64,000 nt of DNA from Obrimoposthia wandeli (Eukaryota), in contig CDROCS010002735.1 in NCBI GenBank assembly GCA_977020255.1, forward strand, positions 1 through 64,000, in the 5' to 3' direction. Numbering within the stretch: position 1 is the first letter of the stretch; the number at the start of each line of letters is the position of its first letter. The position numbers and the translations under genes are program-made. The notes under the pieces are model-generated. The model did not search any database. It was not told the DNA's origin and saw only the letters and a list, made by a program, of their open reading frames with translations. Positions 5,587 to 54,356 of this stretch are shown here, piece after piece.

Positions 5587-5845
5587 AGCACTGGCCTTTA
5601 TGGAGGTTAAAAAATGGCAATATATTGTTTTTATAAAGCAGCAATTTCTGAAATCACATTGTAACTAATAAGTTGTTTAGTACAAGCTAAAAGCAAATTC
5701 GTGGTCAATGGAGATTAAATATTACAGATATCGATTAGAAGGGGCGTATACGTGCAACTCATTATCTTTGCTGTGAGTGTTTCAACTGAGAGTAGGGTTA
5801 TACAATTACTACTAGTCATGTCTATAATAGTAATAATTATCAATT

Positions 5846-6807
5846 ATGGACAAGAAAACACGCATAATTGATATTCTTCTTTTTGATGGTTTGGATCTGC
5901 TTGAATTTGCGGGGCCAGTACAAGCTTTCATTTGCGCAAACGATTTTGACAGCGAAAGCTACATTCATCGTTACGTTTCGATAGATGGTGCTGATGTGGT
6001 GACATCTTGCGACTGCGGCAACTTGGTGTGACAAAGGCCGCATCAACCGGGACCGAAACTCAAGATTTGCTCGTGCCTGGCGGAAGTGGGGTTGATAAAG
6101 CGATTGGAGATCAGCGCATACAATCGCTGATATCCAAGTGGTTGAACGACGGTGGGGATCGGCGAGTTATTTCTATTTGTTCCGGTGCTCTTTTACTTGC
6201 CAATGCTGGTGTGCTTGACGGTATACCAGCGACCACGCATTGGCGTCGCCTTCAACAAGCGCGAAATCAATTCCCAAATGTGAACTGGACAATTGACCAG
6301 CTTTATTCTATTCAAGGACCGTTAATGACATCGGCTGGTGTTACTTCTGGCATCGACCTTGCCCTTGAAGTTATCCGCAGGGATCGTGGACCGATGGTCG
6401 CTCTTGCTACTGCACGACAATTGGTCGTTTATTTGAAGCGAGGGGGTGGTCAGAATCAATTCTCTGACTTACTAGAAGCACAGTTTTCAGATTGTAAAGA
6501 ATTGGGAAAGTTAACGAACGATATTCTTGCTTCTCCGCGCAAAGATTGGACTCTAGAACTGATGGCTGAAGTGGTCAATCTTACCCCCAGAACACTGACT
6601 CGACGATTCTCGAAATCTTTTGGGGTATCGCCCGTTAAATTTCTGGAACGTGTGCGGGTGAAAATAGCCGCAGATGCCATTAGCAGTGGTGCCTCATTCG
6701 AAAAAGTAATTAATATAGCGGGGTTTTCTGGGCTTCAACAAATGCAAAGGGCCTTTAAAAGACAAATTGGCGCCACAGCCAGTCTCTATAAGGAACGGTT
6801 TTGTTGA
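5846..6807 (+). pseudogene. GlxA-family regulator (DJ-1/PfpI plus AraC HTH), frameshifted near 6010
   Basis: 5846..6031 encodes the N-terminus (FDGLDLLEFAGP). 6007..6807 encodes SICSGALLLA, ATTHW, TSAGVTSGID and the AraC HTH. Adding one base in tgcgactg (6007-6014) joins the two frames. Confidence 0.8.
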
Positions 6808-7227
6808 CTTCAGAAGATGATTAATTTAAGGGTTACCTCATTGCTCTAGTTCCAATCTTAAGCGCTCACATTAAGATCTTTAGCCAGTGTGATCTTATGA
6901 CTTTGAATCATAGCTGCCCGGTAAAAATGTAAGCCCTCTAACTCATTTATTTTTAGTGCCTGTTAAGGCTAAAGAGGCACTTTCAATTAAACGTTACTGG
7001 TCGTTAACATAAAATCAGTGAGTTACAGAGCAACAAAAATTAAACTGGACAGCAATGACTTTGAGTAATAAATTTACACATAGCCATTAATGCTAGTTGT
7101 AAAGCACGCTTGAGAAGAAATACCAAGGTACCCATCTAAGTAAAGAGTATGCAATAGATGGTCTATTATTTAAAATGAAGTAGCAGTTTGAGCTAACAGC
7201 ACATCATTATTGAAATGTAGCTATTTG

Positions 7228-7971
7228 TTATGCACCTTTAGCGTTTGCGAGGTAAGCATCTAATGCCTCTGATCCACCGAGAAGGTTACCATTGATAAAT
7301 ATCTGTGGTGCTGTTGACTTCCCAGACACTGAACGTAGAGTGGACTCTTTGAAATCTCTATTTAGAATCAATTCGTCGAATTCGATTCCCGCATTAGTTA
7401 AAGCTTGCTTTGCATGCTGGCAAAATGAACATCCCTCTCGACTAAAGATGGTTGCATCTACTAGTTTTACTGCCTCTGGCGCGATGTAGTTCAACATAGT
7501 ATCAGCATCAGACACTTCAAATGCCTTACCTGGTTCATCCGATTCAAGGAATATTTTCTCAATAACCCCGTCTTTTACCAACATAGAATAGCGCTTTGAA
7601 CGATTACCCATTCTCTGTGGAAATTTTTCATTTAACATCCCCATGTCACTACTAAAATCGCCATTACCATCGGCAATAAAAGTAAGATTGAATGCTTTTT
7701 GGTCTTTTTGCCATTGGCCCATAACAAATGGATCGTTGACAGATAAGCAGAGAACTTCGTCAATTCCATGCTGTTTAAAAATAGGCGCTAATTGGTTGAA
7801 CCGCGGCACATGAGTTGATGAGCAAGTGGGTGTGTAAGCGCCGGGTAAAGCGAATAGAATGACATTCTTGCCACTAAATATATCACCTGCGGTTCTATCA
7901 AGCGCTTCATGTTCACGCAGTGTATGAAATACCACTTGAGGTATACGTTGTCCTTGTTTCTTGGTGGGCAT
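7228..7971 (-). CDS. pgdx: Hybrid peroxiredoxin 5-glutaredoxin (glutathione peroxidase)
   Basis: Prx5 motif LPGAYTPTCSSTHVP, LSVNDPFVM, C-terminal Grx domain with CSFC and TAPQIFI. Likely start ATG 7971. Confidence 0.9.
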   Translation of the reverse strand: MPTKKQGQRIPQVVFHTLREHEALDRTAGDIFSGKNVILFALPGAYTPTCSSTHVPRFNQLAPIFKQHGIDEVLCLSVNDPFVMGQWQKDQKAFNLTFIADGNGDFSSDMGMLNEKFPQRMGNRSKRYSMLVKDGVIEKIFLESDEPGKAFEVSDADTMLNYIAPEAVKLVDATIFSREGCSFCQHAKQALTNAGIEFDELILNRDFKESTLRSVSGKSTAPQIFINGNLLGGSEALDAYLANAKGA

Positions 7972-8554
7972 AATTTTTACCTTATAGCTGTTATTCAACA
8001 TTATTAATGTTAAATAGTGTGACGATGGTTTCAATAGTTGGTTGTATTGCATTCATCATATTTGAGGGCATATCTGTAAGCACTGCTTATCATAGCTCTA
8101 AGTGTTTTTGGCAAAATTCGACATAAAATCGTCAATTATGGACAACCGTTAGCTTATGTGGATTCATTGCTATTGGATACTCTGGGTTGGCTTTTAGACG
8201 ACAGCATAAGTGTGAGTATTCATTACTGCTGCTTGCTTCATTCGTTGGTTAATAAGCAAGGGAAGATTGGTGTCTGCGGTAGACGTCAGACGATGGTCGT
8301 GATTTTATCTGGTGTGCTTTGTCTTGTTGTCTCTCATATGCTCAAAATATATGCATGTAAGTTATTAGAAGGAGTGTGCTAAGTGAGCTGCTGATGTGTT
8401 ATTAACAATATAGGTAGGCAGCTTTATCCACTCAAAAAATACCCGAAATTAACTTCAAAAGTGAATAGCTGACACTGCTACAGTCATTATGATGGATTTT
8501 TAGCCACATTAAATTTTGATACTGGTTTATGTGCTTAAAACATGATTATTTATT

Positions 8555-11168: not shown

Positions 11169-12062
11169 ATGAGTGATGATTACAGACTACGAGTGTTTTT
11201 AGCGGTAGCAAATGCAGGTTCGTTAACCAGAGCTTCTCAGACATTAGAGATAAGCCAACCTGCTGTTAGTAAACATCTCAAATTGCTGGAGCTTTGTATC
11301 GGTCGGCGCTTGTTTCGTCGCCATGGGCGTGGTGTTTCTATGTCTAGTTGCGGTAAGGAGTTGTACGAGTCGATCTCTCCTATTTTTAACCAGCTTGATT
11401 GTGTGATGAGCTTGATGAAAAATGATCATAGCCAGATAACGGGTCATTTTAAAATAGCCACAGTACACACTTTGAACAGCTATTTCGTGGCCCCAGTTAT
11501 TCGAGATGTTTTTGAGCGTTTCCCCGATTTAAAATTACAAATTTTTGAGCGTAGTTCAATGGATGTCTCGCAGCTGATCGAGAGAAAACAAGCTGATATT
11601 GGGTTGGCATATGACACGATGGTTGCAGGAGAAAACCTATCTGTATATCCCTTACACTTAGAACATATGCAACTATATTTTAATCCTCTTTTGACAGTAC
11701 ACTGTAATCAAGATCAAAGCGTTGTCGTTGATGAAGGGTTACCGATGGTGGGTATGCCTAGCGGCTACGCTTTACATCAAATGCTCAATTTAAAATTTTC
11801 AAAGAAGCTCAATCATATAATACAAGTTGAGACAGTTGATTTGATGCTTGAATTAGTGAGAACAGGGATAGCAGCCTGTATTTTACCCGCTAACTTGCCT
11901 AAAAGAATTATAGAGGAAAGCGGGTTGTTAAGATGTGACATTGCCAAGACAAGCTTACACAGAAAAGTGGTGTTAATTATCCATAATGACAATACTCAAT
12001 TAGCCGCGATTAAATATTTAGTCAATCAGTTCAGCCGGCAAGCAGATAACTACAAAGCATAA
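11169..12062 (+). CDS. LysR-family transcriptional regulator
   Basis: LRVFLAVANAGSLTRASQTLEISQPAVSKHLKLLE..LF.R HTH plus substrate-binding domain. Likely start ATG 11169. Confidence 0.9.
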   Translation: MSDDYRLRVFLAVANAGSLTRASQTLEISQPAVSKHLKLLELCIGRRLFRRHGRGVSMSSCGKELYESISPIFNQLDCVMSLMKNDHSQITGHFKIATVHTLNSYFVAPVIRDVFERFPDLKLQIFERSSMDVSQLIERKQADIGLAYDTMVAGENLSVYPLHLEHMQLYFNPLLTVHCNQDQSVVVDEGLPMVGMPSGYALHQMLNLKFSKKLNHIIQVETVDLMLELVRTGIAACILPANLPKRIIEESGLLRCDIAKTSLHRKVVLIIHNDNTQLAAIKYLVNQFSRQADNYKA

Positions 12063-12214
12063 CCAATAGTTATATCTACTATATCTATAATCATCTATCA
12101 CGGCTTCTAACTTCGTTCCATAATCCTAGTGCACTAAAAATAAGTGACACGTCACTGTTAGTGGTGACGGTTAATAAAGAGTGTAATGAGCCGAATAATA
12201 AAGAGGTAGTGATA

Positions 12215-12982
12215 ATGAATCGTGATAAAAGTTATTTTGATAAGCGCAGTACGCAAGAGATGGCCGTACATTTAGGCAAAAGAGAACTAACGGTGACGCA
12301 ACAATTAGCAGTCACTGCACGTATGCTTTCTTTAGATGGACACGAAGCAGGCCTAGCGGGACAGATAACAGCTAGAGCAGAAGTAGAAGATACCTATTGG
12401 ACGTTGCGCTTTGGCGTTGGCTTTGATGAAGCCAGAGCAGAAGATTTTATAAAAATAGACAATGATTTAAACACGATTGAAGGGGAGGGAATGGCGAACC
12501 CTGCCACGCGCTTCCACACTTGGGTATATCGCAACCGCCAAGACATTTCATCAATAGTGCATACGCACCCTCCGTTTATATCTGCAATGTCAATGCTGGA
12601 AGAACCTTTAGTGATTGCACATATGGATCAAACCCCTTTTTATAATGATTGTGCTTTCCTCAAGGAGTGGCCAGGTGTACCTATAGCTGACGACGAAGGT
12701 CGTCTTATTACTGAGGCATTGGCAGGTAAGCATGCTATTATTTTAGCGCATCACGGTTATTTAGTGGCAGGTAAAACGGTGTCAGAATCTTGCTACTTAG
12801 CCGTCTATTTGGAACGTGCAGCGCGCATGCAATTACGCGCAGCTGCAGTCGGTAAAATAAAATCGGTTCCCGACGATTTAGCCGAAGAAGCGGGGAGATA
12901 TTTACGTAAACAATCAATAATGGATGCGACTTTTGATTATTTTACAAGGCAAACCGAAAGAGTTTACGGTACGTATTTGTAG
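12215..12982 (+). CDS. Class II aldolase/adducin-domain protein
   Basis: AGQITAR, metal ligands HTWVY..VHTHPP..LAHHG. SD GAGG precedes ATG 12215. Confidence 0.88.
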   Translation: MNRDKSYFDKRSTQEMAVHLGKRELTVTQQLAVTARMLSLDGHEAGLAGQITARAEVEDTYWTLRFGVGFDEARAEDFIKIDNDLNTIEGEGMANPATRFHTWVYRNRQDISSIVHTHPPFISAMSMLEEPLVIAHMDQTPFYNDCAFLKEWPGVPIADDEGRLITEALAGKHAIILAHHGYLVAGKTVSESCYLAVYLERAARMQLRAAAVGKIKSVPDDLAEEAGRYLRKQSIMDATFDYFTRQTERVYGTYL

Positions 12983-13069
12983 TGGTAGGAGCATTACTTA
13001 ACTAAGTTGTTAAAACGCTCGAATAGCGTAGCCGAATAAATAGCTACGCTAATCAAAGTTAACGATTTA

Positions 13070-13549
13070 CTATGCTTCGAACTCTTCCATTAACACCTTA
13101 AGAGAAAGCTCTTCTTGACTGGTTGTGCCGCGTAGCGGTTTTCTAGGTTGCCCCGCTGCAATACCGCTTAATGCCAAGCCTGCTTTAATTGCTTTGGGTA
13201 TACCACCTGCAACAATAAAACGTAACATCGGTAATTGACGGTAAAAACTTTTTTGTGCTGACTTTAAGTCTCCTTTAGCAACGCTTTCAAATAATGCTTT
13301 AGGTTCGCGTCCCAGCAAGTTAGGTGCTGCTGTGCACCAGCCACTTGCGCCAGCACATAAAGCCTCTAGTGCCAGTGGATTGCTGCCATTGAAAAACGGT
13401 AATTGACCAGCACTTAGTTCAAATATTTTATGCATACGTTGAATGTCACCGGTGCTTTCTTTAATCATGGTCACGTTTTCAATTTCATTATACATTTTGA
13501 CTAACAATTCAGGCGACATGTCGATGCCACTAGTGGCTGGATTATTGTA
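13070..13549 (-). pseudogene. DapA-like (dihydrodipicolinate synthase family) gene, 5' part deleted
   Basis: The frame extends upstream of the listed ORF to YNNPATSGIDMSPELL, then IKESTGD (Schiff-base Lys). Nothing N-terminal of the YNNP motif is present. Confidence 0.8.
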
Positions 13550-14016
13550 TTCACATAGGTTCTATGTCCAAAGTATTTGCTCCCGGTTTAAGGCTTGGAT
13601 ACATGGTGGCAAATGCCAGTTTTATTGAAAAGGCAGCTCAGGAAATAGTATTGATCGATCGCCAAGGGAATACCGTCACAGAACTGGCTGTTTCTGATTT
13701 AATGTAATCAGGTGAAGTGAAGCGGCATATCCGTAAAGTAAGGAAACAATACCAATCTCGTCGTGACTTTACTGCTCAAGAATTTAGAAGAATATATAAT
13801 AGCGAAGTATCTTTTGAGGTACCTGCTGGTGGTTTAGCTCTATGGGTGAATGTAACTAAACTAAAAGATGTGAAAAGTTTCAAAGGTCATAATAACATTG
13901 ACGAAAACTTGTGCGTCTATTATAGCGGTGAAAATTGCAATGGCGTCTTTATTAGATTTGGTTTTGGTGCGTTAACGCAAAGTGAAATTACAGCGTCTAT
14001 AAAGGCGTTAGTTTAG
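13549..14016 (+). pseudogene. MocR/GabR-type PLP aminotransferase-domain regulator, C-terminal remnant
   Basis: Translation from 13549 gives IHIGSMSKVFAPGLRLGY (PLP-Lys motif), an in-frame TAA at 13705-13707, then RHIRK..PAGGLALWV..RFGFGAL. Confidence 0.8.
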
Positions 14017-14641: not shown

Positions 14642-14655
14642 TGTAAGCGCTTTCA
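14642..14655. promoter_or_regulatory. Putative HpsR (LacI-type) operator upstream of the slcD-like gene
   Basis: TGTAAGCGCTTTCA, one mismatch from the perfect site at 17323. Confidence 0.7.
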
Positions 14656-14927
14656 TAATGCTGTATATCTAGGCATCTTTATTGTGGCGGTTTCATCACT
14701 GAAGCACTAATTTTGAGTAAAAATTCAGTTTTCGGACGCTAACCCGTTCTATCCAGAGAAGGTGCTGTAGCGAGAGCAACTCAATGGTTCTAGATGCGGG
14801 CAAATAAATAGGGGCGTTTGGTTATTCCAAATAACACTATCTAATGGTGTGTAGATTGATCCAATGAAACGTTTGAGGCGGTATTTTTTCAGGATGGAAA
14901 CTAACTATTTACCTTAGGAAGACGTAA

Positions 14928-16073
14928 ATGTCAGCATCTCTAATTAGTCGGGCGGCCTGTATTGAAGATTTGAAAAATCTAACTCAAAAACGCATCCCAC
15001 AGTTTGCCTTTGACTATCTCGCGGGTGGATGCAATGCGGAAAATACTTTGCGCAAAAACCGCGCGGCGCTGGATCAAGTAGAGCTGCAACCTCGTTATCT
15101 TGCTACATCGGCAGGAGCGAGTTTAGACACAGTGATTTTAGGTCACAAATACGCTGCACCTTTTGGTGTAGCACCCTTGGGGTTGAGTGGGCTTATTTGG
15201 CCCAAGGCTTCTGAGTATCAGGCCAGTGCTGCGCGCGATGCAAATATACCTTATATTCTAAGTACATTGGCGAGCACCTCAATTGAACGTGCAGCGCAGT
15301 GCGCTGGTGACAATTTTTGGTTCCAGCTCTATCCACCATCAGACTTAGCTATCCGGGCAGATCTGATGCGTCGAGCAGAGGCTGTTGGCTGCCGACATTT
15401 GGTGGTGACCATCGATGTCCCAGCGGCGGGCCGTAGACCAAAAGATATTCGAAACGGGCTCTCTGTCCCGCCAAAAATTAGCGCCACCAGTATCCTACAG
15501 ACTATGGCCCGACCTTCGTGGGCTATGGCAACGGCTTTGCAGGGGATTCCTCAATTTGCATCTATGATGCCCTATATGAAGAACATCACCAATCTAAAGG
15601 ATGTGGCCAATTATATTCGCACTACTTTGAAAGATGTAGTAGATTTTCCCATGCTGCAGCAGCTGCGCCAGCAATGGTCAGGAAAACTAATTGTAAAAGG
15701 TATTTTGAGCGTGGCGGATGCCGAGTTGGCTTTGGCTGCGGGGGCGGACGCAATTATTGTTTCTAATCATGGTGGCAGACAATTAGATGCCGCGCGCTCC
15801 TCGGTTAGTGCACTGCAAGAAATCAGCGAGGTACTGGGAGATCGCATAGTGGTAATGGCCGATAGCGGAGTGGAATCAGGGCCCGACATAGCGCGATTTT
15901 TGGCGCAGGGGGCACAGATGGTTTTTGCAGGACGTGCCTTTATGTATGGGGTAGGCGCGATGGGTGAGGGTGGTGCGGCCCATAGTATCGAAATATTGCG
16001 TTTAGAGCTGCTACAAGTTATGGAGCAGTTGCGCTGTGAAACTCCGCAGCAATTACCCAAATTTCTATTGTAA
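14928..16073 (+). CDS. slcD: FMN-dependent alpha-hydroxy-acid dehydrogenase; probable sulfolactate dehydrogenase (SlcD-like)
   Basis: WFQLY, TIDVP, KLIVKGI, SNHGGRQLD, DSG..G.DI, GR motifs. The specific function is inferred from the hps context and the shared operator. Confidence 0.65.
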   Translation: MSASLISRAACIEDLKNLTQKRIPQFAFDYLAGGCNAENTLRKNRAALDQVELQPRYLATSAGASLDTVILGHKYAAPFGVAPLGLSGLIWPKASEYQASAARDANIPYILSTLASTSIERAAQCAGDNFWFQLYPPSDLAIRADLMRRAEAVGCRHLVVTIDVPAAGRRPKDIRNGLSVPPKISATSILQTMARPSWAMATALQGIPQFASMMPYMKNITNLKDVANYIRTTLKDVVDFPMLQQLRQQWSGKLIVKGILSVADAELALAAGADAIIVSNHGGRQLDAARSSVSALQEISEVLGDRIVVMADSGVESGPDIARFLAQGAQMVFAGRAFMYGVGAMGEGGAAHSIEILRLELLQVMEQLRCETPQQLPKFLL

Positions 16074-16175
16074 AGGCTTGCTTACCCTCATCGACATCCT
16101 AGCGCTGTGTTTCTCAACACCATTACAGCCAGTGCAGTGGTTATGATTCGCAGTGATATTTAAATCAGTAGTGCA

Positions 16176-17222
16176 TTAATGCTCATTAGGGCTAAGAGAG
16201 ATCCTAGCGGGTGCTATGCCCGTGGTCTCGCGTATCCTAATATCAGCGGGTAGTTGCATATGTGAAATAGCGCGGCTGTTGTTTTCAATACAGTTTAAAA
16301 GGTAAGTTGCAGCAAGTGCTCCCATGCGCCTCGCGGGCACATTAATGGTTGTTAGGCTAGGGGATAGTACAGCGGTAATTTCTAAGTTATCAAAGCCAGT
16401 AATCGACAGTGCTTGCGGTACAGTTATACCTAGTTGACGCGCAGCTGAGAGGGCGCCCAATGCGAGAATATCGTTGCCACAGACCACGGCGCTAAATGGC
16501 TGTCCCGCAGCGACTAGGTCAGAGAGAGCATTGCTTGCCTCTGTTGAGCTGTAACGGCACTCGCGAATTAACTCTGATTTGAGATGAATACCTTTTTCCT
16601 GCAGAGACTCCTGTACCCCTCGCAAACGCTCCCTCGCTCTATCGTTATCCGCCTGTATCCCCGTTATCATGGCTATTTGGGTATGTCCCATGGCTATTAA
16701 GTGCTCACCAATTTTTCGCCCCGCAGCATAGTTGTCAAAACCAATGCAGCTGTGCATGGACTGGCTGTTGTAGGTCCACAAATTGACAAAGGGAATCCGA
16801 TGGAGGTTGAGCATTTGATAAACTTCGGGCCGATGATCTTCACCTATCAGCACCATGCCGTCGATCCCGCGCGTTATCAAACTCTTGACTTCGTGCAACT
16901 CCTCATCGAGGGAATAATTACTACTGGCAATCAGTAAAGTGTAGTTGGCCTCTGAAAGCCCACGCTGTAGGTAGTGAATGCCATTGGCAAAAATGCCGTT
17001 ATCTATGGTAGGCACAATAGCACCTATAGTATGTGTTCGGCTGGAGGCAAGGGCTCGAGCTGCACCGTGCGGGGCATAACCGAGATCTTCTATCGCTGCG
17101 TTAATGCGTTCGCGCAATTTTAGTTTGACTTGTTCCGGATGATTGATACATCGCGAAACTGTAGCGGTAGATACTCCCGCGGCAGTCGCAACGTCTTGCA
17201 ATCTCGGTTTTGGCTGGTGCAT
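16176..17222 (-). CDS. hpsR: LacI-family repressor of the DHPS cluster
   Basis: LQDVATAAGVSTATVSR HTH, sugar-binding fold, divergent from the TRAP operon. Confidence 0.85.
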   Translation of the reverse strand: MHQPKPRLQDVATAAGVSTATVSRCINHPEQVKLKLRERINAAIEDLGYAPHGAARALASSRTHTIGAIVPTIDNGIFANGIHYLQRGLSEANYTLLIASSNYSLDEELHEVKSLITRGIDGMVLIGEDHRPEVYQMLNLHRIPFVNLWTYNSQSMHSCIGFDNYAAGRKIGEHLIAMGHTQIAMITGIQADNDRARERLRGVQESLQEKGIHLKSELIRECRYSSTEASNALSDLVAAGQPFSAVVCGNDILALGALSAARQLGITVPQALSITGFDNLEITAVLSPSLTTINVPARRMGALAATYLLNCIENNSRAISHMQLPADIRIRETTGIAPARISLSPNEH

Positions 17223-17290
17223 ACCGCTTCCTCATCAATGAATACTAGGGCGCCATTTTACAGGTCGCTAGAAATATTCCTAGATACTTG

Positions 17291-17336
17291 TTGACAGTAT
17301 TACAGTAAAACTATAATTTAAATGTAAGCGCTTACA
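17291..17336 (+). promoter_or_regulatory. Sigma70 promoter with a perfect LacI-type operator
   Basis: TTGACA 17291-17296 and TATAAT 17312-17317 (15-bp spacer, short); palindrome TGTAAGCGCTTACA at 17323..17336. Confidence 0.8.
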
Positions 17337-17372
17337 AAAAAACTTACAAAAACCATCTTCGGAGAATACTTA

Positions 17373-17597
17373 ATGCTTGCCGAAATGCTAAAGCAGCACG
17401 CTTATCGAATTGCCATAGCACTGTTTGTGATTTTTTTAGTCAACGTGCTCGTAGGTAAAATTTCAATGGAATTACTAGATTATCAACTACCTCTGGGATT
17501 TGACGGGGTTGTAGAGTTTTTAGTTATGTGTGCCGCATGCATCTTTTTTGTTATCGGAATTCTTCGAAGTGAAAACCTGACCAAAAAAAATAATTAA
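17373..17597 (+). CDS. Small two-helix membrane protein heading the hps operon
   Basis: 74 aa, two hydrophobic segments, SD GGAG upstream, 22 bp before hpsK. Confidence 0.65.
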   Translation: MLAEMLKQHAYRIAIALFVIFLVNVLVGKISMELLDYQLPLGFDGVVEFLVMCAACIFFVIGILRSENLTKKNN

Positions 17598-17619
17598 ATA
17601 AATCTATCAGGAGCAATTC

Positions 17620-18765
17620 ATGAGTAAATTAAATACCCCCCTCAATCCAGAACGTCGCCGATTTATGTCACTGACCAGCAAGTTTGGTTTTACCGCTGCG
17701 ACGCTGGCGGCAGCATCCGGTGTGATGATGTCTGATCAAGCGGTGGCTGCAATATCTAAAGAAGAGAAAGAGCGTGAATCTAAGGCCAAGCATAAAATGG
17801 TGATTGCCACTGCTTATGTGTTAGGCGCATCGCGTAGTTATCCTATTATGCAGTTAGATTTCAAAGAGAACATCCAAAATCTGACCAACCGTGAGGTGTA
17901 TGTCAAACTTGCGCCTGGTGGGCAGCTGGGAGCAGGTGGAGCACTAGCGCAGAAAGTACAGCAGGGTACCATTCAAGCAGCGCAACATTCACTGTCAAAC
18001 TTTGCCGCCTTTGCCCCAGTTGTCGATATGATCAACATTCCTTATTGGTGTGGTGAAAACCAACAATTCACTAACTTAGTGAACTCAGATGCATGGCGTA
18101 ATCAGGTCAACCCGAAGGTTGAAGAAAAAGGCTTTATGCCTCTTTGGTATGTCAATATAGACCCTCGCGTCGTCGCTCTACGTCGCGGCATGGAAGGGCC
18201 AATTAAAACGCCTGATCAGATGGAAGGCATCAAATTCCGCGTACCGGGTTCTAAAATACTGCAACAGTTCTATCGTTTGTTGGGCGCGAACCCTACACCC
18301 GTCGCTTGGGGCGAGACTCCATCTGCCATCAAACAAGGCGTGGCAGATGCATTGGATCCTTCAGTTGAAGCGCTGAACGTATTTGGTTTCAAAGATGTAC
18401 TTTCCCATGTGACCTTTATTCGTTCTGTGCCAGATGCGCAAGTCTACTCTTGCAACTTGGAATGGTTCAGATCGCTACCGAGCAAAGTGCAAGATGGTAT
18501 CAAGTTCGCGGCAGAGGTAACGGCGCAGCAAAATTTAGCTAAAGTACCAGCGGCACGTGGCTATGCAATGGCTGAGTTGGCAGAAGCGGGTGTTAAATTC
18601 TATTCTCCGACAGGGGAAGAACTGCAACAATGGAAAGATACCGCAGGGCATCAGTTACCGGTTTGGGACAAGACTAAGATTGAACTGGCAGGTTCTTTGG
18701 ATGTCTTTAACACTTTACTTGAAGCGGCTAATACTCAAGGGCAACATTTCGTGCACGATATCTGA
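17620..18765 (+). CDS. hpsK: TRAP substrate-binding protein (DctP family), Tat-exported; DHPS-binding
   Basis: ERRRFM Tat motif, GIKFRVPGS, LGANPTPVAWGETPSAIKQGVADA. Confidence 0.85.
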   Translation: MSKLNTPLNPERRRFMSLTSKFGFTAATLAAASGVMMSDQAVAAISKEEKERESKAKHKMVIATAYVLGASRSYPIMQLDFKENIQNLTNREVYVKLAPGGQLGAGGALAQKVQQGTIQAAQHSLSNFAAFAPVVDMINIPYWCGENQQFTNLVNSDAWRNQVNPKVEEKGFMPLWYVNIDPRVVALRRGMEGPIKTPDQMEGIKFRVPGSKILQQFYRLLGANPTPVAWGETPSAIKQGVADALDPSVEALNVFGFKDVLSHVTFIRSVPDAQVYSCNLEWFRSLPSKVQDGIKFAAEVTAQQNLAKVPAARGYAMAELAEAGVKFYSPTGEELQQWKDTAGHQLPVWDKTKIELAGSLDVFNTLLEAANTQGQHFVHDI

Positions 18766-18848
18766 TTTGATCTTAAGTTGTGCCGCGCAGTTAATCTGTG
18801 CTGGCACAGCATTCGTTCAACGATTGATCAATATCAGAGGCTTATATT

Positions 18849-19376
18849 TTGAATATAAACAAAAAATCATTCTGGAAAAACCTAGATGACAATGCAGAAC
18901 GCTGGATGCTACTGGTGTTTTATGTGGTGATTGTACTGACCATAGGGGTCGAAGTGGTGCGCCGCTTTGCGCTGTCTTACTCCTCAATCTGGGGAGAGGA
19001 AGTTGCCCGTTATGCATTTATTTACCTCGCCTGGATAGGTGCTGCTTCAGCAATCAAAGATCGCGCTCATATCCGTATCGATGTGATTCTCAATTTCCTG
19101 TCGCGTACAGGTCAGTTACTCATTTATATATTCGGCGATCTAGTGATGTTGATCATCTCTATGCTGGCCTTTTATTACTCCATGGAAACGCTTTTGACTT
19201 CAATTAAATTTGGTTCAGTAACTCACGGCTTGGGTATCAGTCAAGCTTGGTTTCTCGCCGCTGTACCCCTGGGGTTCTCATTGATGTTATTTCGCCTACT
19301 GCAATCTTTAATGCGCGATATTAGGGCGCTAACAAACGATAAGCCAATCTACACCGGACATCGTCTGTTCGATTAA
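18849..19376 (+). CDS. hpsL: TRAP small permease (DctQ)
   Basis: VVRRF..WGEEVARYAFIYLAWIGAA..AHIRID; four TM segments; TTG start after AGAGG. Confidence 0.85.
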   Translation: MNINKKSFWKNLDDNAERWMLLVFYVVIVLTIGVEVVRRFALSYSSIWGEEVARYAFIYLAWIGAASAIKDRAHIRIDVILNFLSRTGQLLIYIFGDLVMLIISMLAFYYSMETLLTSIKFGSVTHGLGISQAWFLAAVPLGFSLMLFRLLQSLMRDIRALTNDKPIYTGHRLFD

Positions 19377-19391
19377 ACGGGAAAATTTCAC

Positions 19392-20714
19392 ATGTATAAC
19401 TATTTAAATGCTGAAGTCAGCTTGGACTGGGGATGGGAGCTCGGTGGCCCCTTGCTGATAGGGGTCATTATGTTTGGCCTTGGGGTACCTGTCTGGGCGG
19501 TGTTAGGTGTTATCGCGGTACTGATTTTAGAGTTCAGTGGCGCACTGCCGTTGTCGCTCTTAGGCGAAGCGCTGTTTGACGGAATAGATGCTTTTGCATT
19601 GATCGCCATTCCGCTATTTATTTTGACCGGTGACGTATTAGTGCGTACCGGTCTCTCACGTAAATTATTGGATATCGCCGAGGCACTGACCGGGGGTGCA
19701 AAATCTGGCTTCGGTACTGCCACAGTACTAGTCTGCGGTTTCTTTGCCTGTATATCAGGATCAGATGCGGCGGGTGCGGCGGGTGTTGGGCGCATGACAA
19801 TCGATAGATTGGTGGAGCAGGGGTATCCCAAGCCTTACGCTTGTGCGCTTGTGGCCGCTGGTGCTTGTACTGGCATTCTTATTCCGCCTTCAATCGCCTA
19901 CATCATCATTGGCTTAGTGTTGGGGATATCCGCCTCGACGTTGTTCTTGGCGGCATTAGTCCCTGGGCTGTTAGTGATGGGTGTCATTATGTTGTGCAAC
20001 GTGATGCTGAATTTAAGATACGGCTATGAAAATGCCGGAGGCGGCTTTTCGCTAAAGCGTATCGCGAATTCAATTTACGTGGGCCGCTACGCATTAATTG
20101 TACCGGTGATTATTTTAGGCGGGATTTACAGCGGTGTTTTTACGCCGACAGAAGCGGCTGCCGTGGCGGTCATTACCACTATTATTATCGGTTTGTTGCA
20201 GAACACGATTCGCCTGTCGGATTTTCCGGCAATGCTCGCCAGCTCAGCCAAAGTGAATGGTGTGATCTTACCTATCATCGCCTTTTCGCTGCCATTAGCG
20301 CAGGCGCTTGCGGCACTTGAAGTGCCGCAAGGGTTTGTTTACATGGTAACAGATATCACCGATAACCCGACCATGATCACATTATTGATGATTGGCATTC
20401 TGATATTGGCAGGTTGTGTGATGGAGACGACTCCAAATATCGTTATCTTGGCGCCTATTATGCTACCGCTGGCACAGGAAATTGGCATGGCCGATATTCA
20501 GTTTTGCATCATGATGATTACCGCGTTGGGTGTCGGTTTTATTACTCCACCATTAGGGCTCAACCTATTTGTGGTTTCCGGTCTCACCGGTACTTCAATA
20601 CTAGGTATAGCACGCAATGCGGTGCCTTTTGTACTGGCAATGCTAAGCGTAGTACTGCTATTAGCATTTATTCCAGAACTTTCACTCTGGGCACTGCCCA
20701 GTCACACCTACTGA
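19392..20714 (+). CDS. hpsM: TRAP large permease (DctM)
   Basis: LIAIPLFILTG, ISGSDAA, GILIPPS, GVFTPTEAA, ITPPLGLNLFV. Confidence 0.88.
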   Translation: MYNYLNAEVSLDWGWELGGPLLIGVIMFGLGVPVWAVLGVIAVLILEFSGALPLSLLGEALFDGIDAFALIAIPLFILTGDVLVRTGLSRKLLDIAEALTGGAKSGFGTATVLVCGFFACISGSDAAGAAGVGRMTIDRLVEQGYPKPYACALVAAGACTGILIPPSIAYIIIGLVLGISASTLFLAALVPGLLVMGVIMLCNVMLNLRYGYENAGGGFSLKRIANSIYVGRYALIVPVIILGGIYSGVFTPTEAAAVAVITTIIIGLLQNTIRLSDFPAMLASSAKVNGVILPIIAFSLPLAQALAALEVPQGFVYMVTDITDNPTMITLLMIGILILAGCVMETTPNIVILAPIMLPLAQEIGMADIQFCIMMITALGVGFITPPLGLNLFVVSGLTGTSILGIARNAVPFVLAMLSVVLLLAFIPELSLWALPSHTY

Positions 20715-22066
<1,352 letters not shown>

Positions 22067-22067
<1 letters not shown>

Positions 22068-22825
22068 TGAAACTTTTTAATTTAGGTGGAAAAGTAGCCT
22101 TGATAACCGGCGCTTCTTCGGGAATTGGCGCGCAGCAGGCGAGGGCACTAAGTGGTGCAGGTGCTAATGTGGTATTGCTGGGTAGGCGCCGCGAGCGGCT
22201 GGATGAACTAGCAATAGAGATACGTGCCAGCGGCGGCCAAGCTGCCATAGTTGACGCAGATTTAACCAATATTGAACAGTTGGACGACATCGTCAGCCGC
22301 TGTTTAGAGCCCTGGCAGCAAATTGATATTGTGTGTAATACCGCCGGTGTTAATTTGCGACAGCACGCAGATAAAGTGACGTTGCAGAGCTGGGATCAAA
22401 CCTTAGATTTGAACCTGAAAATACCGTTTTTTCTGGCGCAGAAACTAGTACCCGCAATGGCGGAAAGAGGCTGGGGCAAAATTATTAATGTGGCATCCCT
22501 GCAATCAGAGCGGGCTTTCGCCAATGGCATAGCCTACGGTGCTTCTAAAGGGGGAATAATGCAGTTGACCCGAGCGATGGCCGAAGCCTGGTCATCTCGC
22601 GGAATTTGCTGTAATGCGATAGCGCCGGGTTTTTTCCCCACAGAATTAACCCAAGCAGTATTCGATCAAGATCAGTTGGCGCAAAAATTGGCGGATCAAA
22701 CCGCCATTGGACGCAACGGCAGCTTAGCGGATTTAGACGGCGTTTGTATCTTCTTGGCGAGCCATAGCTCTGATTATATTACCGGCCAAACTATCTATAT
22801 TGACGGCGGTTTCACCGCAAAGTGA
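22067..22825 (+). CDS. hpsO: Short-chain dehydrogenase, DHPS 2-dehydrogenase
   Basis: TGASSGIG, YGASK, NAIAPGFFPT; coupled to the hpsN stop. Confidence 0.8.
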
Positions 22826-22831
22826 GAACAT

Positions 22832-23851
22832 ATGACAACTGACACGATGAACGCGCTGGTATATACCGATACTCAAGAGATTACCTATCGCAGGGAGCCG
22901 TTACCAAAACCGCGCCCGGGTGATGTACGTGTTGATATCGCCGCTACTGCAATTTGCGGATCGGATATGCACGCCTATCACGGTAAAGACGCCCGTAGAG
23001 TACCACCATTAATTCTCGGTCACGAGGTTAGCGGCACTGTTCTGGATGGTCGTTATGCCGGACAACGTATGGTGATAAACCCACTGATGACTTGCGGTGA
23101 GTGTGTCGATTGTGCCGGCGGGCGCAGCAATTTGTGCGCCAATAGAGAGCTTATCGGTATGTACCTGCCGGGGGCATTTGCCGAGCAAGTGGCGATTTCA
23201 GAGCGCAACTTACTGCCTATTCCCAGCGATATGAACCCTATCAATGCGTCACTTACTGAACCAACAGCAACCGGATTACACGCGGTTGCGTTAGTTGAAC
23301 GGGTCTTGGCGCGGCCGCTTTCAGAGGCGCGCTGTTTAGTAATAGGTGGCGGTGCGATCGGTATGCTGACCACGCTGATCTTGAAAGCTAAAGGTTGCGT
23401 GGCGATAGATCTTGCAGAAACTAACGCGTTGAGAAGACGCAGCGTTGAAGAGCAAAATTGTGCCACTTGTTTTAATCCAATGGAAGAGCCTCTGCCTCAT
23501 CCTAGTGGCTACGACGTGGTCTTTGACTGTGTGGGTGCTGGTGTGACAAGGCGTACGGCCAGCGAGGCAGTCCGCCCCGGTGGCATTATTTCCCATGTGG
23601 GTTTGCAGGACGATGGGCCGGGGCTAGATACCCGTAAACTTACCTTGCAAGAAGTCATACTATTGGGCAACTACTGTTACACCCGAGCCGATATGCAAGC
23701 GTCGATCGACATGCTGTATCGCGGTCAACTGGGTAGTTTAGATTGGGTTGAAGTGCGCCCGCTCTCAGGCGGCTCTCAGGCCTTCACTGACTTGCATAAC
23801 GGTAATGTGGCGGCGGCCAAAATAGTGCTGCAACCAGATTCGTTATTATGA
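22832..23851 (+). CDS. hpsP: Zn-dependent (MDR) alcohol dehydrogenase, DHPS 2-dehydrogenase
   Basis: ICGSD, GHE, CGECVDC..C structural Zn site, LTEP, GGGAIG. Confidence 0.8.
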   Translation: MTTDTMNALVYTDTQEITYRREPLPKPRPGDVRVDIAATAICGSDMHAYHGKDARRVPPLILGHEVSGTVLDGRYAGQRMVINPLMTCGECVDCAGGRSNLCANRELIGMYLPGAFAEQVAISERNLLPIPSDMNPINASLTEPTATGLHAVALVERVLARPLSEARCLVIGGGAIGMLTTLILKAKGCVAIDLAETNALRRRSVEEQNCATCFNPMEEPLPHPSGYDVVFDCVGAGVTRRTASEAVRPGGIISHVGLQDDGPGLDTRKLTLQEVILLGNYCYTRADMQASIDMLYRGQLGSLDWVEVRPLSGGSQAFTDLHNGNVAAAKIVLQPDSLL

Positions 23852-23964
23852 TTTTTAAGTGCAATGGCTCTAGATTTACGTCGAGGTGATGTGTTTGTTA
23901 TCAGCAAAAAACCAAGTTAGCAGTTTAACAACATACAATGATTATATTTTAGGAAAAAAATAAC

Positions 23965-25083
23965 ATGAATAACAGTGAAAAAATCTGGCATGCGCTGGGT
24001 CAAAACAAAGTAGACAAGATAGCATTCAATCCATGCAATAAGCTTAATTTAGTGATGAAGTACGTCCCTAAAGAGATGGAAGTATGGGACATAACTAAAG
24101 AATCGGGTGGTCTGGCGCTATGTTTTGGGCGCAGTTTAGGCGCTAAACGCTCTGCGATGTTTATTCAAAACACTGGCTTAGGTAACTTGGTAACTGAACT
24201 TTACACTATGCAAAAGTTGTATCAGGAAGGGTTACCTATATTCGCATCTTTTCGAGGTTACTTCCAAGAGCCTATAGAAGCGCAAATCATCTACGGCAGC
24301 AACATGCAAAGGTTACTTGGCGCGATTGATGTCGAGTATCGTATTCTGGAAAAAAGCGAAGATCTGATTGACCTAGAAGAAGATGTCGCCAACTGTTTTG
24401 CTGAGAAGAAAGTCAAAGTTTACTTGTTGTCACCAGAACTTTGGGAAGAACGTGTGGATGACTACCATGTATTTGGTCAGCCAAAATTCACTCCAGTGAC
24501 GGTTAAAACTGAAGCTTATGATGGCAACCCTACGCAAATACGTGCTGAGGCCATCGAAGTAATTATGGATAACGTTGGTAGCGATGATATTGTTCTGTCG
24601 CAGATCGGTTTCCCTTCTAAAGAAGTTTATAACGCCAATGACCGCGCAGAGAATTTTTACATGTTGGGTGCTCTTGGCTCAGCGACAGAAGTGGGCATAG
24701 GGCTGGCAGATGCGCTAGAAGATCGCCATGTCTACATAGTGGATGGCGATGGATCTTTCTTCTTTAACCCTAACCAGTTGGTTGATTTGGCAGCATTTAA
24801 ACCGAAAAACTTAACGGTAATCTGTTTAGACAATGGTAGCTATGGCTCCACTGGCAACCAGCCGACGCTGAGTTCAAGTGGTATGAATTTAAGTTCTTGG
24901 GCGCAGACCATGGGTATAGAGCGCACGGGCATCACAGACGAGCCTGAAGTATTTGCCGAGTTGCTCAAAGAGAAGCCTTCTTTCATTCACTATCTGATTA
25001 AAGCGGGTAATAAAAAAACGGGTGATGAAATACCTTTGAAAGCAGTGGAAATTAAGCAACGCTTTATGGACGCTGTACTCTAA
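23965..25083 (+). CDS. comDE: Fused sulfopyruvate decarboxylase (ComD-ComE), TPP-dependent
   Basis: N-half is ComD-like (NPC..KES..QNTGLGN..SFRG..EPIEAQ..LSPELWE). C-half is ComE-like (IGFPSKEVY..DRAENFYMLG..GDGS..LDNGSYGSTGNQPT). Confidence 0.8.
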   Translation: MNNSEKIWHALGQNKVDKIAFNPCNKLNLVMKYVPKEMEVWDITKESGGLALCFGRSLGAKRSAMFIQNTGLGNLVTELYTMQKLYQEGLPIFASFRGYFQEPIEAQIIYGSNMQRLLGAIDVEYRILEKSEDLIDLEEDVANCFAEKKVKVYLLSPELWEERVDDYHVFGQPKFTPVTVKTEAYDGNPTQIRAEAIEVIMDNVGSDDIVLSQIGFPSKEVYNANDRAENFYMLGALGSATEVGIGLADALEDRHVYIVDGDGSFFFNPNQLVDLAAFKPKNLTVICLDNGSYGSTGNQPTLSSSGMNLSSWAQTMGIERTGITDEPEVFAELLKEKPSFIHYLIKAGNKKTGDEIPLKAVEIKQRFMDAVL

Positions 25084-25141
25084 AAATCTTGAATAAGCCA
25101 ATTGTTTTATCTAAAGCTCTTTAAAACGATTAAACATACGC

Positions 25142-25179
25142 TTGGCAGCTTTGAATGACTGGTTATTCAAAGCTGCCAA
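25142..25179 (+). terminator. Strong hairpin ending the hps-comDE operon
   Basis: TTGGCAGCTTTGAAT-(8 nt)-ATTCAAAGCTGCCAA, 15-bp perfect stem. Confidence 0.7.
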
Positions 25180-25443
25180 ACGGGTTGACAACTCGAGATG
25201 AAAAAAAATCTACTTCAATTTAGGCCCAGATTGATAGTTCCTAACATTTCCTAAGTACCTACATCTATGTAGGCAAGTAGCAAGGAACTTTTGAAGACGA
25301 GCTTCGCCGAGCATAGAGGGTATTATTTCCTTTGATATCGGCTTTTACTGATCAGCTAGCCTAATCGATAATTAATACTGATAAAAACCTTACTCTTACA
25401 ATTCAGCATTTTAAAATCAAATTCTCTCTCAGAGACCCCGTTA

Positions 25444-26094
25444 ATGACCATTAAACAGAAAATAATATCGTCTATTTCTCTTTCAATATTCTTAATAATT
25501 ACCTTACTTGCTTTTATTAGTAATCATAATATAAGCCAGTCATCGATGGACTCTACTATTAAATTTATGGACGAAGAAGTGAGTGCTACCGGAAAAACAC
25601 TAGAACAGAAAATGGAAGTGCTTTTTATAGGACTAGAGCTAGCCGCTTCTCTTTATAGTCCAGATCGAGCGGTGGCCGCGAGCCCTGATAAAGAAGCATT
25701 GGCACGTGAGATGGCACCCATAACGGCTTTGACCAAATCCTTAAGTATCATCAATGCATATGCGGGCCATAAAGGTGGCGTAACATATTCTTCGTCGACC
25801 GCAGGTGAAGTGCCTAATTTTAATGCCAAAGAAAAAAAACGTGAATGGTACTTACGTATCTTTGCAGGTGACAAGCGCTTAATTACCAAACCATACAAAT
25901 CTGCTGAGGGAGGATTAGTGATGGCGATAGCGGTGCCTTTGCTTAAAAATGGTGCCGTTGTCTCAACCATGAACGCTAATTTAGCACTCACTGAAATATC
26001 GTCATTTATAGAACAGCTTAACCCAGCTGCAAAAATTGACTTAACCAGAGATGATGGTTTCATCATAGCGGGTGCGAATGAGTGGATTGGCTAA
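25444..26094 (+). pseudogene. Truncated methyl-accepting chemotaxis protein (TM plus dCache only)
   Basis: N-terminal TM, REWY..ITKPY..MAIAVP..NANLAL Cache motifs. Stops before TM2, HAMP and the signalling domain. Confidence 0.7.
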
Positions 26095-26406
26095 AATCAG
26101 TTTCAACGCTATCTCGCTCAAAAAATAGCGGCTAATTATATAAAAAGTAACTACGAGGCTATTGCATATAAAGGTAGTGGTGCTGATTTAGAACTGATCC
26201 GCGGAAGTCGAAAATTATTGTTGTGTAGTAAGCGATTTAAAGCGGCTAAAACCGGAATAGAGCCTTTGAAACTATTAGTTGCTGTTGGAAATAAAGCTGA
26301 AGCAATGGGATATTTGTATGTAACACTGGGCGATGTCTCAGCTTCTGCTCGTGATTATGCTCAAAAAAATAATATAGAGTTAATTCAGTCTAGCAGTACT
26401 GTTTGA
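26095..26406 (+). pseudogene. Mrr-like restriction endonuclease catalytic-domain fragment
   Basis: In frame after the MCP stop: ..YKGSGADLELIRGSRKLLLCSKRFKAAKTGIEPL..ARDYAQKNNIELI, matching the Mrr_cat D..xK pattern. No start codon or N-terminal anchor. Confidence 0.55.
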
Positions 26407-53549: not shown

Positions 53550-54356
53550 ATGACCCAGTCAATACTCAAAGTAGATCAGATATCTCTAGCATTTGGTGGA
53601 GTGAAAGCGCTGACAGATGTGAGCTTTGAGGTAAAAAAAGGCTCAGTGTTTTCAATTATAGGCCCAAACGGCGCCGGGAAAACGTCAATGCTAAACTGCA
53701 TTTCAGGACGTTACCAGCCAAATAGCGGTAGCATATCTTTTCAAGATAAAGATGTTACTAACCTAGAGCCTAACTATCGAGCAGATTTAGGTATGGGGCG
53801 TACTTTTCAAAACTTAGCCTTATTTGGGCACTTATCGGTTTTAGATAACATTATGGTGGGTCGCCATCACTTATTGAAGAATAACTGGTTAACAGGCCCT
53901 TTATATTGGGCGTCTGGCGCACAAAAAGAAGAATTAGAGCACCGCAGAATTGTAGAAGAAGTTATTGATTTCTTGGAGATTTCCCATATTCGAAAATCCA
54001 TTGCAGGCACGCTTTCTTATGGCTTGCGTAAGCGAGTAGAGCTCGCTCGTGCCATGGCGTTGAATCCAAAGCTTATTTTGCTAGATGAGCCAATGGCCGG
54101 TATGAACTTAGAAGAAAAAGAGGATATGGCTCGCTATATTCTTGATTTAAATGAAGAGTTTGATATCACTGTGATGATGATAGAGCACGATATGGGTGTG
54201 GTCATGGATATTTCACATGAGGTAATGGTACTTGATTTCGGTAAGAAGTTGATTACAGGATTACCCGAAGAAGTGATGGCCGATCCACATGTTAAACGCG
54301 CTTATCTTGGTATTGAAGATGATGAGATTGACGATGCAATGCAGGAGGCTAGTTAA
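53550..54356 (+). CDS. LIV-type ABC ATPase (LivG-like)
   Basis: GPNGAGKT, RTFQN, LSYGLRKRVELARA, LLDEP. Confidence 0.92.
   Translation: MTQSILKVDQISLAFGGVKALTDVSFEVKKGSVFSIIGPNGAGKTSMLNCISGRYQPNSGSISFQDKDVTNLEPNYRADLGMGRTFQNLALFGHLSVLDNIMVGRHHLLKNNWLTGPLYWASGAQKEELEHRRIVEEVIDFLEISHIRKSIAGTLSYGLRKRVELARAMALNPKLILLDEPMAGMNLEEKEDMARYILDLNEEFDITVMMIEHDMGVVMDISHEVMVLDFGKKLITGLPEEVMADPHVKRAYLGIEDDEIDDAMQEAS

Follow-up and report, generated by a model that had tools for sequence, protein, structure and literature searches.

How far can a marine gammaproteobacterium carry the breakdown of the algal sulfonate 2,3-dihydroxypropane-1-sulfonate (DHPS) with one jointly regulated set of genes? DHPS is among the main currencies of sulfur and carbon that pass from diatoms to bacteria, and roseobacters and SAR11 usually get the credit for turning it over. 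The question is raised by ten genes at positions 14642-25182 of a 64,000-nucleotide stretch of DNA (Obrimoposthia wandeli assembly GCA_977020255.1, contig CDROCS010002735.1, positions 1 to 64,000), which is referred to as the window. That these genes form a real, regulated cluster of a marine Oceanospirillaceae bacterium, with predicted roles in DHPS import and oxidation to sulfoacetaldehyde, is well supported by comparison of the encoded proteins and their regulatory sites. The cluster is very likely a catabolic regulon that is controlled by HpsR and leads from DHPS to sulfoacetaldehyde.

According to the open reading frame (ORF) listing and to Pfam and NCBIfam scans, the ten genes are, in order, a flavin mononucleotide (FMN)-dependent dehydrogenase gene (FMN_dh), hpsR, an ORF of 74 amino acids (a.a.), hpsKLM, hpsN, hpsO, hpsP, and comDE; all lie on the plus strand except hpsR. 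An initial annotation had named nine of them, with strands and order that were all borne out by the scans, and had overlooked the tenth, the conserved 74-a.a. ORF (17373-17597). It had set the left border at 14642, where a LacI-type palindrome starts, and the right border at 25179, which falls inside a strong, bidirectional terminator-like hairpin (25139-25182, stem of 18-21 bp) that marks the end of the operon.

The hps core and its operator

HpsK, HpsN, HpsO, and HpsP are orthologous to the proteins of those names in known DHPS systems, and functional residues are conserved. The first gene of this core, hpsK (17620-18765), encodes a putative DHPS-binding solute receptor of a tripartite ATP-independent periplasmic (TRAP) transporter, with a twin-arginine-like leader (RRRF). 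HpsK scores 534 bits against Ruegeria pomeroyi HpsK (RpHpsK; PDB id: 24gc), as opposed to 69.5 bits for the next chain, and an alignment shows that it keeps all of the seven DHPS-contacting residues (Tyr75, Ser125, Asn128, Arg184, Arg207, Asp272, and Gln274) described for the RpHpsK cluster of binding proteins (PMC13335735). The TRAP small permease HpsL (18849-19376; PF04290) and large permease HpsM (19392-20714; PF06808, and TIGR00786 above its cut-off) are 59 and 68% identical, respectively, to HpsL and HpsM of Leisingera.

The HisD-like product of hpsN (20763-22067; PF00815, 430 bits) is the predicted (R)-DHPS 3-dehydrogenase. It scores 592 bits against HpsN of Cupriavidus pinatubonensis (CpHpsN; 8v35) and 548 bits against 8wwe, whereas histidinol dehydrogenase chains reach at most 250 bits. 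The metal, sulfonate, and catalytic residues of HpsN have been described, and its product is R-sulfolactate (PMC11382572). In an alignment with the Cupriavidus sequence, the GRY(A/S)H motif with the sulfonate-binding histidine (His126) is kept, and the zinc ligands (Gln248, His251, Asp352, and His411), the catalytic Glu318 and His319, and Lys353 are identical. Among the published contacts only Ser226 is changed, by a conservative replacement with threonine that Leisingera has as well.

Directly after hpsN come hpsO (22067-22825), which encodes a short-chain dehydrogenase/reductase (SDR), and hpsP (22832-23851), which encodes a zinc-dependent alcohol dehydrogenase; both products are predicted DHPS dehydrogenases. 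HpsO, which is 58% identical to HpsO of Leisingera, scores 267 bits against R. pomeroyi HpsO (8wwf) and 246 bits against 9pvq; its highest-scoring chain is 6le3 (282 bits), labelled a gluconate 5-dehydrogenase, and other gluconate-type SDRs reach at most 171 bits. HpsP keeps the catalytic histidine of its GHE motif and a cysteine ligand in alignment. It scores 282 bits, vs. 128 bits for the next chain, against 8wwd, which we take to be the HpsP of PMC11131964. Judged by these scores and residues, HpsK, HpsN, HpsO, and HpsP can be assigned to DHPS with high confidence. As the initial annotation had recognized, the order of hpsR and hpsKLM-N-O-P is that of the roseobacter cluster, both in the annotation of R. 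pomeroyi (PMC4334477) and on the Leisingera plasmid. The part that HpsO and HpsP play as a racemase in the classical pathway is disputed: this model has been retained (PMC13335735), whereas others report an oxidation at C3 that gives R- and S-sulfolactaldehyde, with HpsP yielding (S)-sulfolactaldehyde (PMC11131964).

The 74-a.a. ORF lies immediately upstream of hpsK and is predicted to form two hydrophobic helices. Of 24 loci with an HpsK-type dctP, at least 18 carry an intact homologue of 61-88 a.a., Alphaproteobacteria included, and dN/dS for the ORF is 0.12-0.32. It matched no Pfam or Atlas family; its homologue is annotated as hypothetical in Leisingera and has no gene call in a sister metagenome-assembled genome (MAG). 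The DHPS TRAP transporter may have a fourth component in the encoded membrane protein.

Divergent from the hps operon, hpsR (16176-17222, minus strand) encodes a LacI-family regulator with a LacI helix-turn-helix and a Peripla_BP domain, which is 43 and 40% identical to the products of the LacI genes beside hpsN in Leisingera and Cupriavidus, respectively. Reading of the intergenic sequence revealed a promoter-like TTGACA-15 nt-TATAAT for the hps operon (17291-17317, plus strand); its 15-nt spacer lies outside the 16-18 nt range of the scan tool, so the tool did not list it. Directly after the -10 box stands a perfect 14-bp palindrome, TGTAAGCGCTTACA (O1, 17323-17336), which is conserved in relatives and is overlapped by a promoter-like site on the minus strand (17337-17310). 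A second copy with one mismatch, TGTAAGCGCTTTCA (O2, 14642-14655), lies 286 bp upstream of FMN_dh, and a 28-nt stretch of the O2 region is common to the hps promoter region. The window contains three matches to the palindrome, while 0.37 are expected by chance. The third of these, at 53602-53615, has two mismatches, lies inside a gene for a branched-chain-type ABC transporter ATPase, and was judged to be probably due to chance.

About 35 loci of Gammaproteobacteria and Alphaproteobacteria likewise have the palindrome TGTAAGCGCTTACA ahead of their hps operons, and it also stands before the hpsN clusters on plasmids of Leisingera (Alphaproteobacteria) and Cupriavidus (Betaproteobacteria). The second copy before FMN_dh is kept in five relatives (loci L001, L002, L003, L006, and L081, the last being the sister MAG), that is, in six genomes including the window. 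In two further Oceanospirillaceae MAGs (L041 and L043), another copy precedes xsc. On this pattern of sites, the hps operon, FMN_dh, and, in relatives, xsc are assigned to one regulon. Nothing else in the sequence ties the flanking FMN_dh to the DHPS regulon as strongly as this shared operator, through which HpsR is predicted to act as a repressor.

The FMN dehydrogenase and the single-chain decarboxylase

FMN_dh (14928-16073; PF01070, 389 bits) aligns colinearly, from end to end and with the long internal segment included, with 6bfg, a mandelate dehydrogenase of the membrane-associated type in its full length. None of the catalytic motifs of L-2-hydroxyacid dehydrogenases (Y, Y, D, R, K, H, and R) is missing. 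By these features the protein is an FMN-dependent 2-hydroxyacid dehydrogenase of the membrane-associated type, and it is proposed to oxidize (R)-sulfolactate to sulfopyruvate on account of its linkage with hpsN, comDE, and xsc and of the shared operator. An identity as an LldD L-lactate dehydrogenase was ruled out by the scores against NF033901 (257 bits, cut-off 550) and NF008398 (301 bits, cut-off 376) and by the genomic context. The cluster is compatible with the stereochemistry of this step. Under the Cahn-Ingold-Prelog rules, (R)-sulfolactate is the L-configured acid. The argument of the initial annotation, that the product of HpsN has the configuration for which this FMN family is specific, thus holds, as R-sulfolactate is the substrate under which SlcD has been listed (PMC11131964).

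The linkage is recurrent: FMN_dh and the fused comDE are found together with hpsN in at least 12 loci and in two gene orders. When loci were sampled independently through FMN_dh, hpsNOP or split comD and comE were again found beside it, and a 59% identical homologue stood alone in an unrelated context. A search of plasmids with FMN_dh gave no match above 46% identity, and the nearest (Chondrinema and Pararhizobium) lie in unrelated contexts. Two metagenome contigs of the Joint Genome Institute (L094, 2075-5194, and L095) carry an FMN_dh that is 67% identical to that of the window in the order LysR-comD-comE(split)-FMN_dh-SDR and have no hpsN; these modules are probably dedicated to sulfolactate only, and their SDR could be a sulfoacetaldehyde reductase.

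The ancestry of the FMN enzyme was examined in a tree of 25 sequences, which has few outgroups and long branches and in which the Leisingera plasmid enzyme stands in, as roseobacter reference, for the SlcD proteins of R. pomeroyi and Roseovarius nubinhibens. The hps-linked enzymes of Gammaproteobacteria form one clade (support 97/98), whose closest relatives come from unrelated contexts, and the roseobacter-type enzymes form a separate clade (99/97). Constraining all hps-linked enzymes to one clade costs 39 log-likelihood units and is rejected (p-AU 0.00076). By this phylogeny, the gammaproteobacterial FMN_dh is not an orthologue of the hps-linked enzyme in the SlcD position of roseobacters. 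The assignment of the enzyme to the SlcD branch in the initial annotation is not supported as far as lineage is concerned; in its proposed function the enzyme is SlcD-like.

The last gene, comDE (23965-25083), encodes a single-chain, two-domain thiamine diphosphate (ThDP)-dependent enzyme of 372 a.a. that matches the models of both subunits of ComDE. Its identity to ComE and ComD, the separate subunits of Leisingera, is 36 and 27%, respectively. Overall, its identity to ComD/E is 31%, as compared with 24-27% to phosphonopyruvate decarboxylases (AepY). In a tree, the fused sequences form a clade (100/100) that is sister to split ComDE (91/85), and fused and split forms together are set apart from AepY at 100/100. 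An identity as phosphonopyruvate decarboxylase was ruled out, with 156 bits against a cut-off of 312.5 for TIGR03297 and no phosphoenolpyruvate (PEP) mutase in the window. Placed by this tree, fused ComDE is a deep-branching sister lineage of split ComDE, and sulfopyruvate is its proposed substrate. Both FMN_dh and fused ComDE receive only generic names from the NCBI pipeline. On a plasmid of Sphingobium sp. TomMM15 (L093, 1569-6596), a split ComDE-like pair adjoins an aldehyde dehydrogenase gene and lies near a gene for an FMN enzyme that oxidizes 2-hydroxyacids; this arrangement follows the same chemical logic as ComDE and FMN_dh, and in the ComDE tree the pair is set on a branch of great length.

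The proposed route would begin with the binding of periplasmic DHPS by HpsK and its import by HpsLM, probably with the conserved 74-a.a. membrane protein. HpsN would convert (R)-DHPS and 2 NAD+ to (R)-sulfolactate. The other enantiomer would enter through HpsO and HpsP, either by way of a 2-oxo intermediate, as in the racemase model, or by C3 oxidation to sulfolactaldehyde. The membrane-associated FMN_dh would then oxidize (R)-sulfolactate to sulfopyruvate, which the single-chain ThDP enzyme ComDE would decarboxylate to sulfoacetaldehyde. In the absence of inducer, HpsR would occupy TGTAAGCGCTTACA, one copy of which overlaps the divergent hpsR and hps promoters while the second lies upstream of FMN_dh. 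The expected next enzyme, Xsc, would be encoded elsewhere in the genome.

Related clusters and the end point of the proposed pathway

A scan of species-representative genomes with HpsN gave 80 loci at an identity of at least 71%, mostly from Gammaproteobacteria. The exact gene order of the window is found in Neptunomonas japonica DSM 18939 (NZ_AUGR01000002.1, L001), a Neptunomonas MAG, a sea-ice MAG, and two Oceanospirillaceae MAGs, namely the sister MAG (L081) and one that is labelled Nitrincolaceae in its contig name. All five (L001, L002, L003, L006, and L081) share the ten-gene order, the strands, and both operator copies with the window. Protein identity to the window is 72-93% in N. japonica, where the flanking genes differ from those of the window, and 93-100% in the sister MAG, where the cluster occupies the same chromosomal site, with an intact downstream chemoreceptor gene and a different content at the left junction. 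No description of these Neptunomonas-type loci was found in the searchable literature, and the exact HpsN sequence of the window has no record in public assemblies.

The genes are arranged differently, as hpsR-hpsNOP-comDE-FMN_dh, in Leucothrix pacifica (L009), Cocleimonas flava (L012), and several Oceanospirillaceae MAGs. The loci of L. pacifica, C. flava, and the MAGs L041 and L043 share with the window the lineages of fused ComDE and FMN_dh (54-67% identity) and the operator, but differ in gene order and in the transporter, which is another TRAP type or an ABC system. Unlike the window, L041 and L043 also have xsc behind an operator copy. This xsc is genuine (1007 bits to NF005713) and adjacent to the ComDE cluster; in both MAGs it stands directly after the LacI gene of the cluster (16601-18614). 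The palindrome that precedes it places xsc in the same regulon in a gammaproteobacterium. A search with Xsc protein gave only matches of at least 89% identity that belong to other MAGs, with no recognizable entry from Neptunomonas or the sister MAG.

Outside the Gammaproteobacteria, the nearest counterpart is a plasmid of Leisingera caerulea (L082) with the order hpsR-small ORF-hpsKLMNOP-usp-comD-comE-FMN_dh. The regulator family, the operator, the small ORF, and the order hpsKLM-N-O-P are as in the window, the hps core proteins are 46-68% identical, and here too the genes leading from sulfolactate to sulfoacetaldehyde are physically joined to the hps genes. In the window, by contrast, ComDE is a single polypeptide, FMN_dh belongs to another lineage and lies upstream of hpsR with its own operator, and hpsQ (UspA) is missing. 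In R. pomeroyi the cluster reads hpsKLMNOPQR-slcD (PMC4334477; PMC13335735). The cluster of C. pinatubonensis (L083), hpsR-hpsN-hpsO-(MFS)-hpsP-suyAB (PMC11382572), likewise has a LacI regulator and a related operator, and its HpsN (61% identical, with an identical active site apart from the Ser226/Thr exchange), HpsO (53%), and HpsP (49%) resemble those of the window. It differs in uptake through a major facilitator superfamily (MFS) protein and in the direct cleavage of sulfolactate by SuyAB, and has neither FMN_dh nor ComDE. R. nubinhibens has a bifurcated sulfolactate pathway of SlcD, ComDE, and Xsc (Denger et al., 2009, as cited in PMC11382572), which has the same chemistry as is proposed for the window, from sulfolactate through sulfopyruvate to sulfoacetaldehyde. 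With Leisingera as the point of comparison, the roseobacter-type enzymes prove to be no more than distant relatives of FMN_dh and ComDE of the window.

The initial annotation had regarded the joining of uptake, oxidation, and decarboxylation as unfamiliar in marine Gammaproteobacteria. The combined architecture is not new, because N. japonica DSM 18939 and several MAGs have the same order, Roseobacteraceae such as Leisingera have hps, comDE, and FMN_dh joined in one cluster, and clusters of hpsNOP with slcD, comDE, and xsc, one of them from the gammaproteobacterium Granulosicoccus, have been illustrated (PMC11382572). The locus is a gammaproteobacterial variant of a known DHPS pathway. Its modest new points are the non-orthologous SlcD-like enzyme, the fused ComDE lineage, and, taken together, the conserved HpsR operator and the small ORF that precedes hpsK.

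Several observations weigh against a DHPS-to-sulfoacetaldehyde function. The enzymes of the cluster and their close gammaproteobacterial homologues are known from sequence alone. FMN_dh is 38% identical to the hps-linked enzyme of Leisingera (222 bits), which is no closer to it than mandelate or lactate dehydrogenases are, and paralogues in unrelated contexts are nearer (44-46%). ComDE falls under the equivalog cut-offs for both subunits (109 bits for TIGR03845, cut-off 148; 193 bits for TIGR03846, cut-off 221.5), which ComD and ComE of Leisingera pass with 149 and 246 bits, respectively, and the fused form sits on a very long branch. The window has no Xsc, Pta, SuyAB, CuyA, aldehyde dehydrogenase, or sulfite exporter. 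Nor does it have an (S)-sulfolactate dehydrogenase, which, like an aldehyde dehydrogenase, would be needed for S-DHPS under the C3-oxidation scheme (PMC11131964). Finally, in X1, X9, and X11, which are contigs from what is probably the source sample, nothing matched an xsc of Oceanospirillaceae at 80% identity or more, a comparison that cannot prove absence.

Some of these observations would fit a reading in which only hpsR and hpsKLMNOP serve DHPS, while FMN_dh and the ThDP decarboxylase act on another pair of 2-hydroxyacid and 2-oxoacid, for instance lactate or phosphonolactate-type compounds, and are neighbors by chance or for another reason. FMN_dh lies outside the hps-linked lineage of roseobacters and scores as a generic relative of LldD or mandelate dehydrogenase (MDH), ComDE misses the ComD and ComE cut-offs, and a 59% identical FMN_dh homologue is found in an unrelated context. 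Such a division of labor is nevertheless quite improbable in the face of the HpsR operator at the FMN_dh gene in six genomes and of an FMN_dh/ComDE pair that turns up repeatedly beside hpsN, in two gene orders, and also beside xsc. In addition, ComDE groups with ComDE rather than with AepY, no PEP mutase is nearby, and the equivalog cut-offs of LldD and Ppd are missed by a wide margin. The claim of the initial annotation that FMN_dh and ComDE belong with the DHPS genes is upheld by this recurrence with hpsN and, in relatives, with xsc.

The reading of the locus as one DHPS regulon leaves its end point to be considered. The initial annotation had called the island self-contained; this is accurate as far as sulfoacetaldehyde, beyond which the window encodes no C-S cleaving enzyme. 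The pathway might thus stop at sulfoacetaldehyde, with DHPS partly oxidized for reducing power and the C2 sulfonate excreted rather than desulfonated. This would yield 2 NADH and one quinol with release of CO2, and the excreted product would be sulfoacetaldehyde itself or a derivative of it, isethionate or sulfoacetate. In none of the Neptunomonas-type loci (window, L001-L003, L006, and L081) is there an xsc within 10 kb. The source-sample comparison, which points the same way at its 80% threshold, is unable to show that xsc is absent, xsc is often encoded away from the hps genes (PMC11382572), and relatives have xsc under the same operator. A pathway that ends in excretion is therefore considered unlikely. 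If true, such partial oxidation would make the Neptunomonas-type Oceanospirillaceae a C3-to-C2 sulfonate cross-feeding step. The bolder form of this proposal, a cross-feeding regulon that combines a non-orthologous FMN_dh, a fused ComDE, and HpsKLM with a previously unrecognized fourth small membrane subunit, is likewise given only a small chance.

Residence or acquisition of the locus

The cluster differs in composition from its surroundings. Its GC content is 0.476, vs. 0.41 and 0.39 in the flanks, and GC at third codon positions (GC3) is 0.41-0.52, vs. 0.33-0.39. The locus could be an old resident of the chromosome rather than a horizontally acquired island, its higher GC then reflecting protein constraints. 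The cluster is indeed GC-richer than its own flanks in every relative, and its place on the chromosome is shared by the sister MAG, where its nucleotide identity to the window is 93.7%, vs. 89-90% in the flanks. Searches of the locus turned up no integrase, transposase, tRNA, or flanking direct repeats, and its borders are marked by no Rfam family, tRNA, or flanking repeat. The shared site and the lack of a mobility signature argue against recent acquisition. On the other hand, GC3 is raised as well, the flanks in N. japonica are completely different, near-identical clusters occur in different gammaproteobacterial orders, hpsN clusters reside on alphaproteobacterial and betaproteobacterial plasmids, and genes are broken at both junctions. 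Long residence is given somewhat less than even likelihood.

At the left junction, the broken genes comprise the C-terminal half of a gene of the dihydrodipicolinate synthase (DHDPS) family (13070-13519, minus strand), whose Pfam match covers only positions 143-287 of the 289 in the profile, and an aminotransferase-like fragment (13555-14016, plus strand) with an in-frame stop in its translation. At the right junction (25444-26406, plus strand), a 216-a.a. chemoreceptor sensor fragment ends in a stop and is followed in the same frame by an endonuclease-like fragment, which, by its translation only, would be what is left of the C-terminal part of an Mrr-type endonuclease. At this position the methyl-accepting chemotaxis protein of the sister MAG is intact, with 631 a.a. 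Two segments on the left side of the cluster are missing from the sister MAG: 5833-8539 (2.7 kb), with an AraC/DJ-1 regulator and a Redoxin-glutaredoxin fusion, and 11654-13575, with the 3' part of a LysR gene, a class II aldolase gene, and the DHDPS fragment.

Whatever its age, the locus bears on the range of bacteria to which DHPS catabolism may be ascribed. The comparisons point to a set of marine Gammaproteobacteria, including Oceanospirillaceae, Thiotrichaceae, and sea-ice and symbiont-related lineages, in which the whole way from DHPS to sulfoacetaldehyde would be encoded under common regulation. In several of the gammaproteobacterial loci xsc, too, follows a copy of this operator, in contrast to the statement that the Xsc route is confined to Alphaproteobacteria (PMC11382572). 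As their FMN_dh is of a different lineage, their decarboxylase is fused, and both are generically named, these bacteria would be missed by surveys that use roseobacter SlcD and ComDE as markers. The model of DHPS catabolism would gain two simple, testable elements in the HpsR operator and the small ORF that precedes hpsK.

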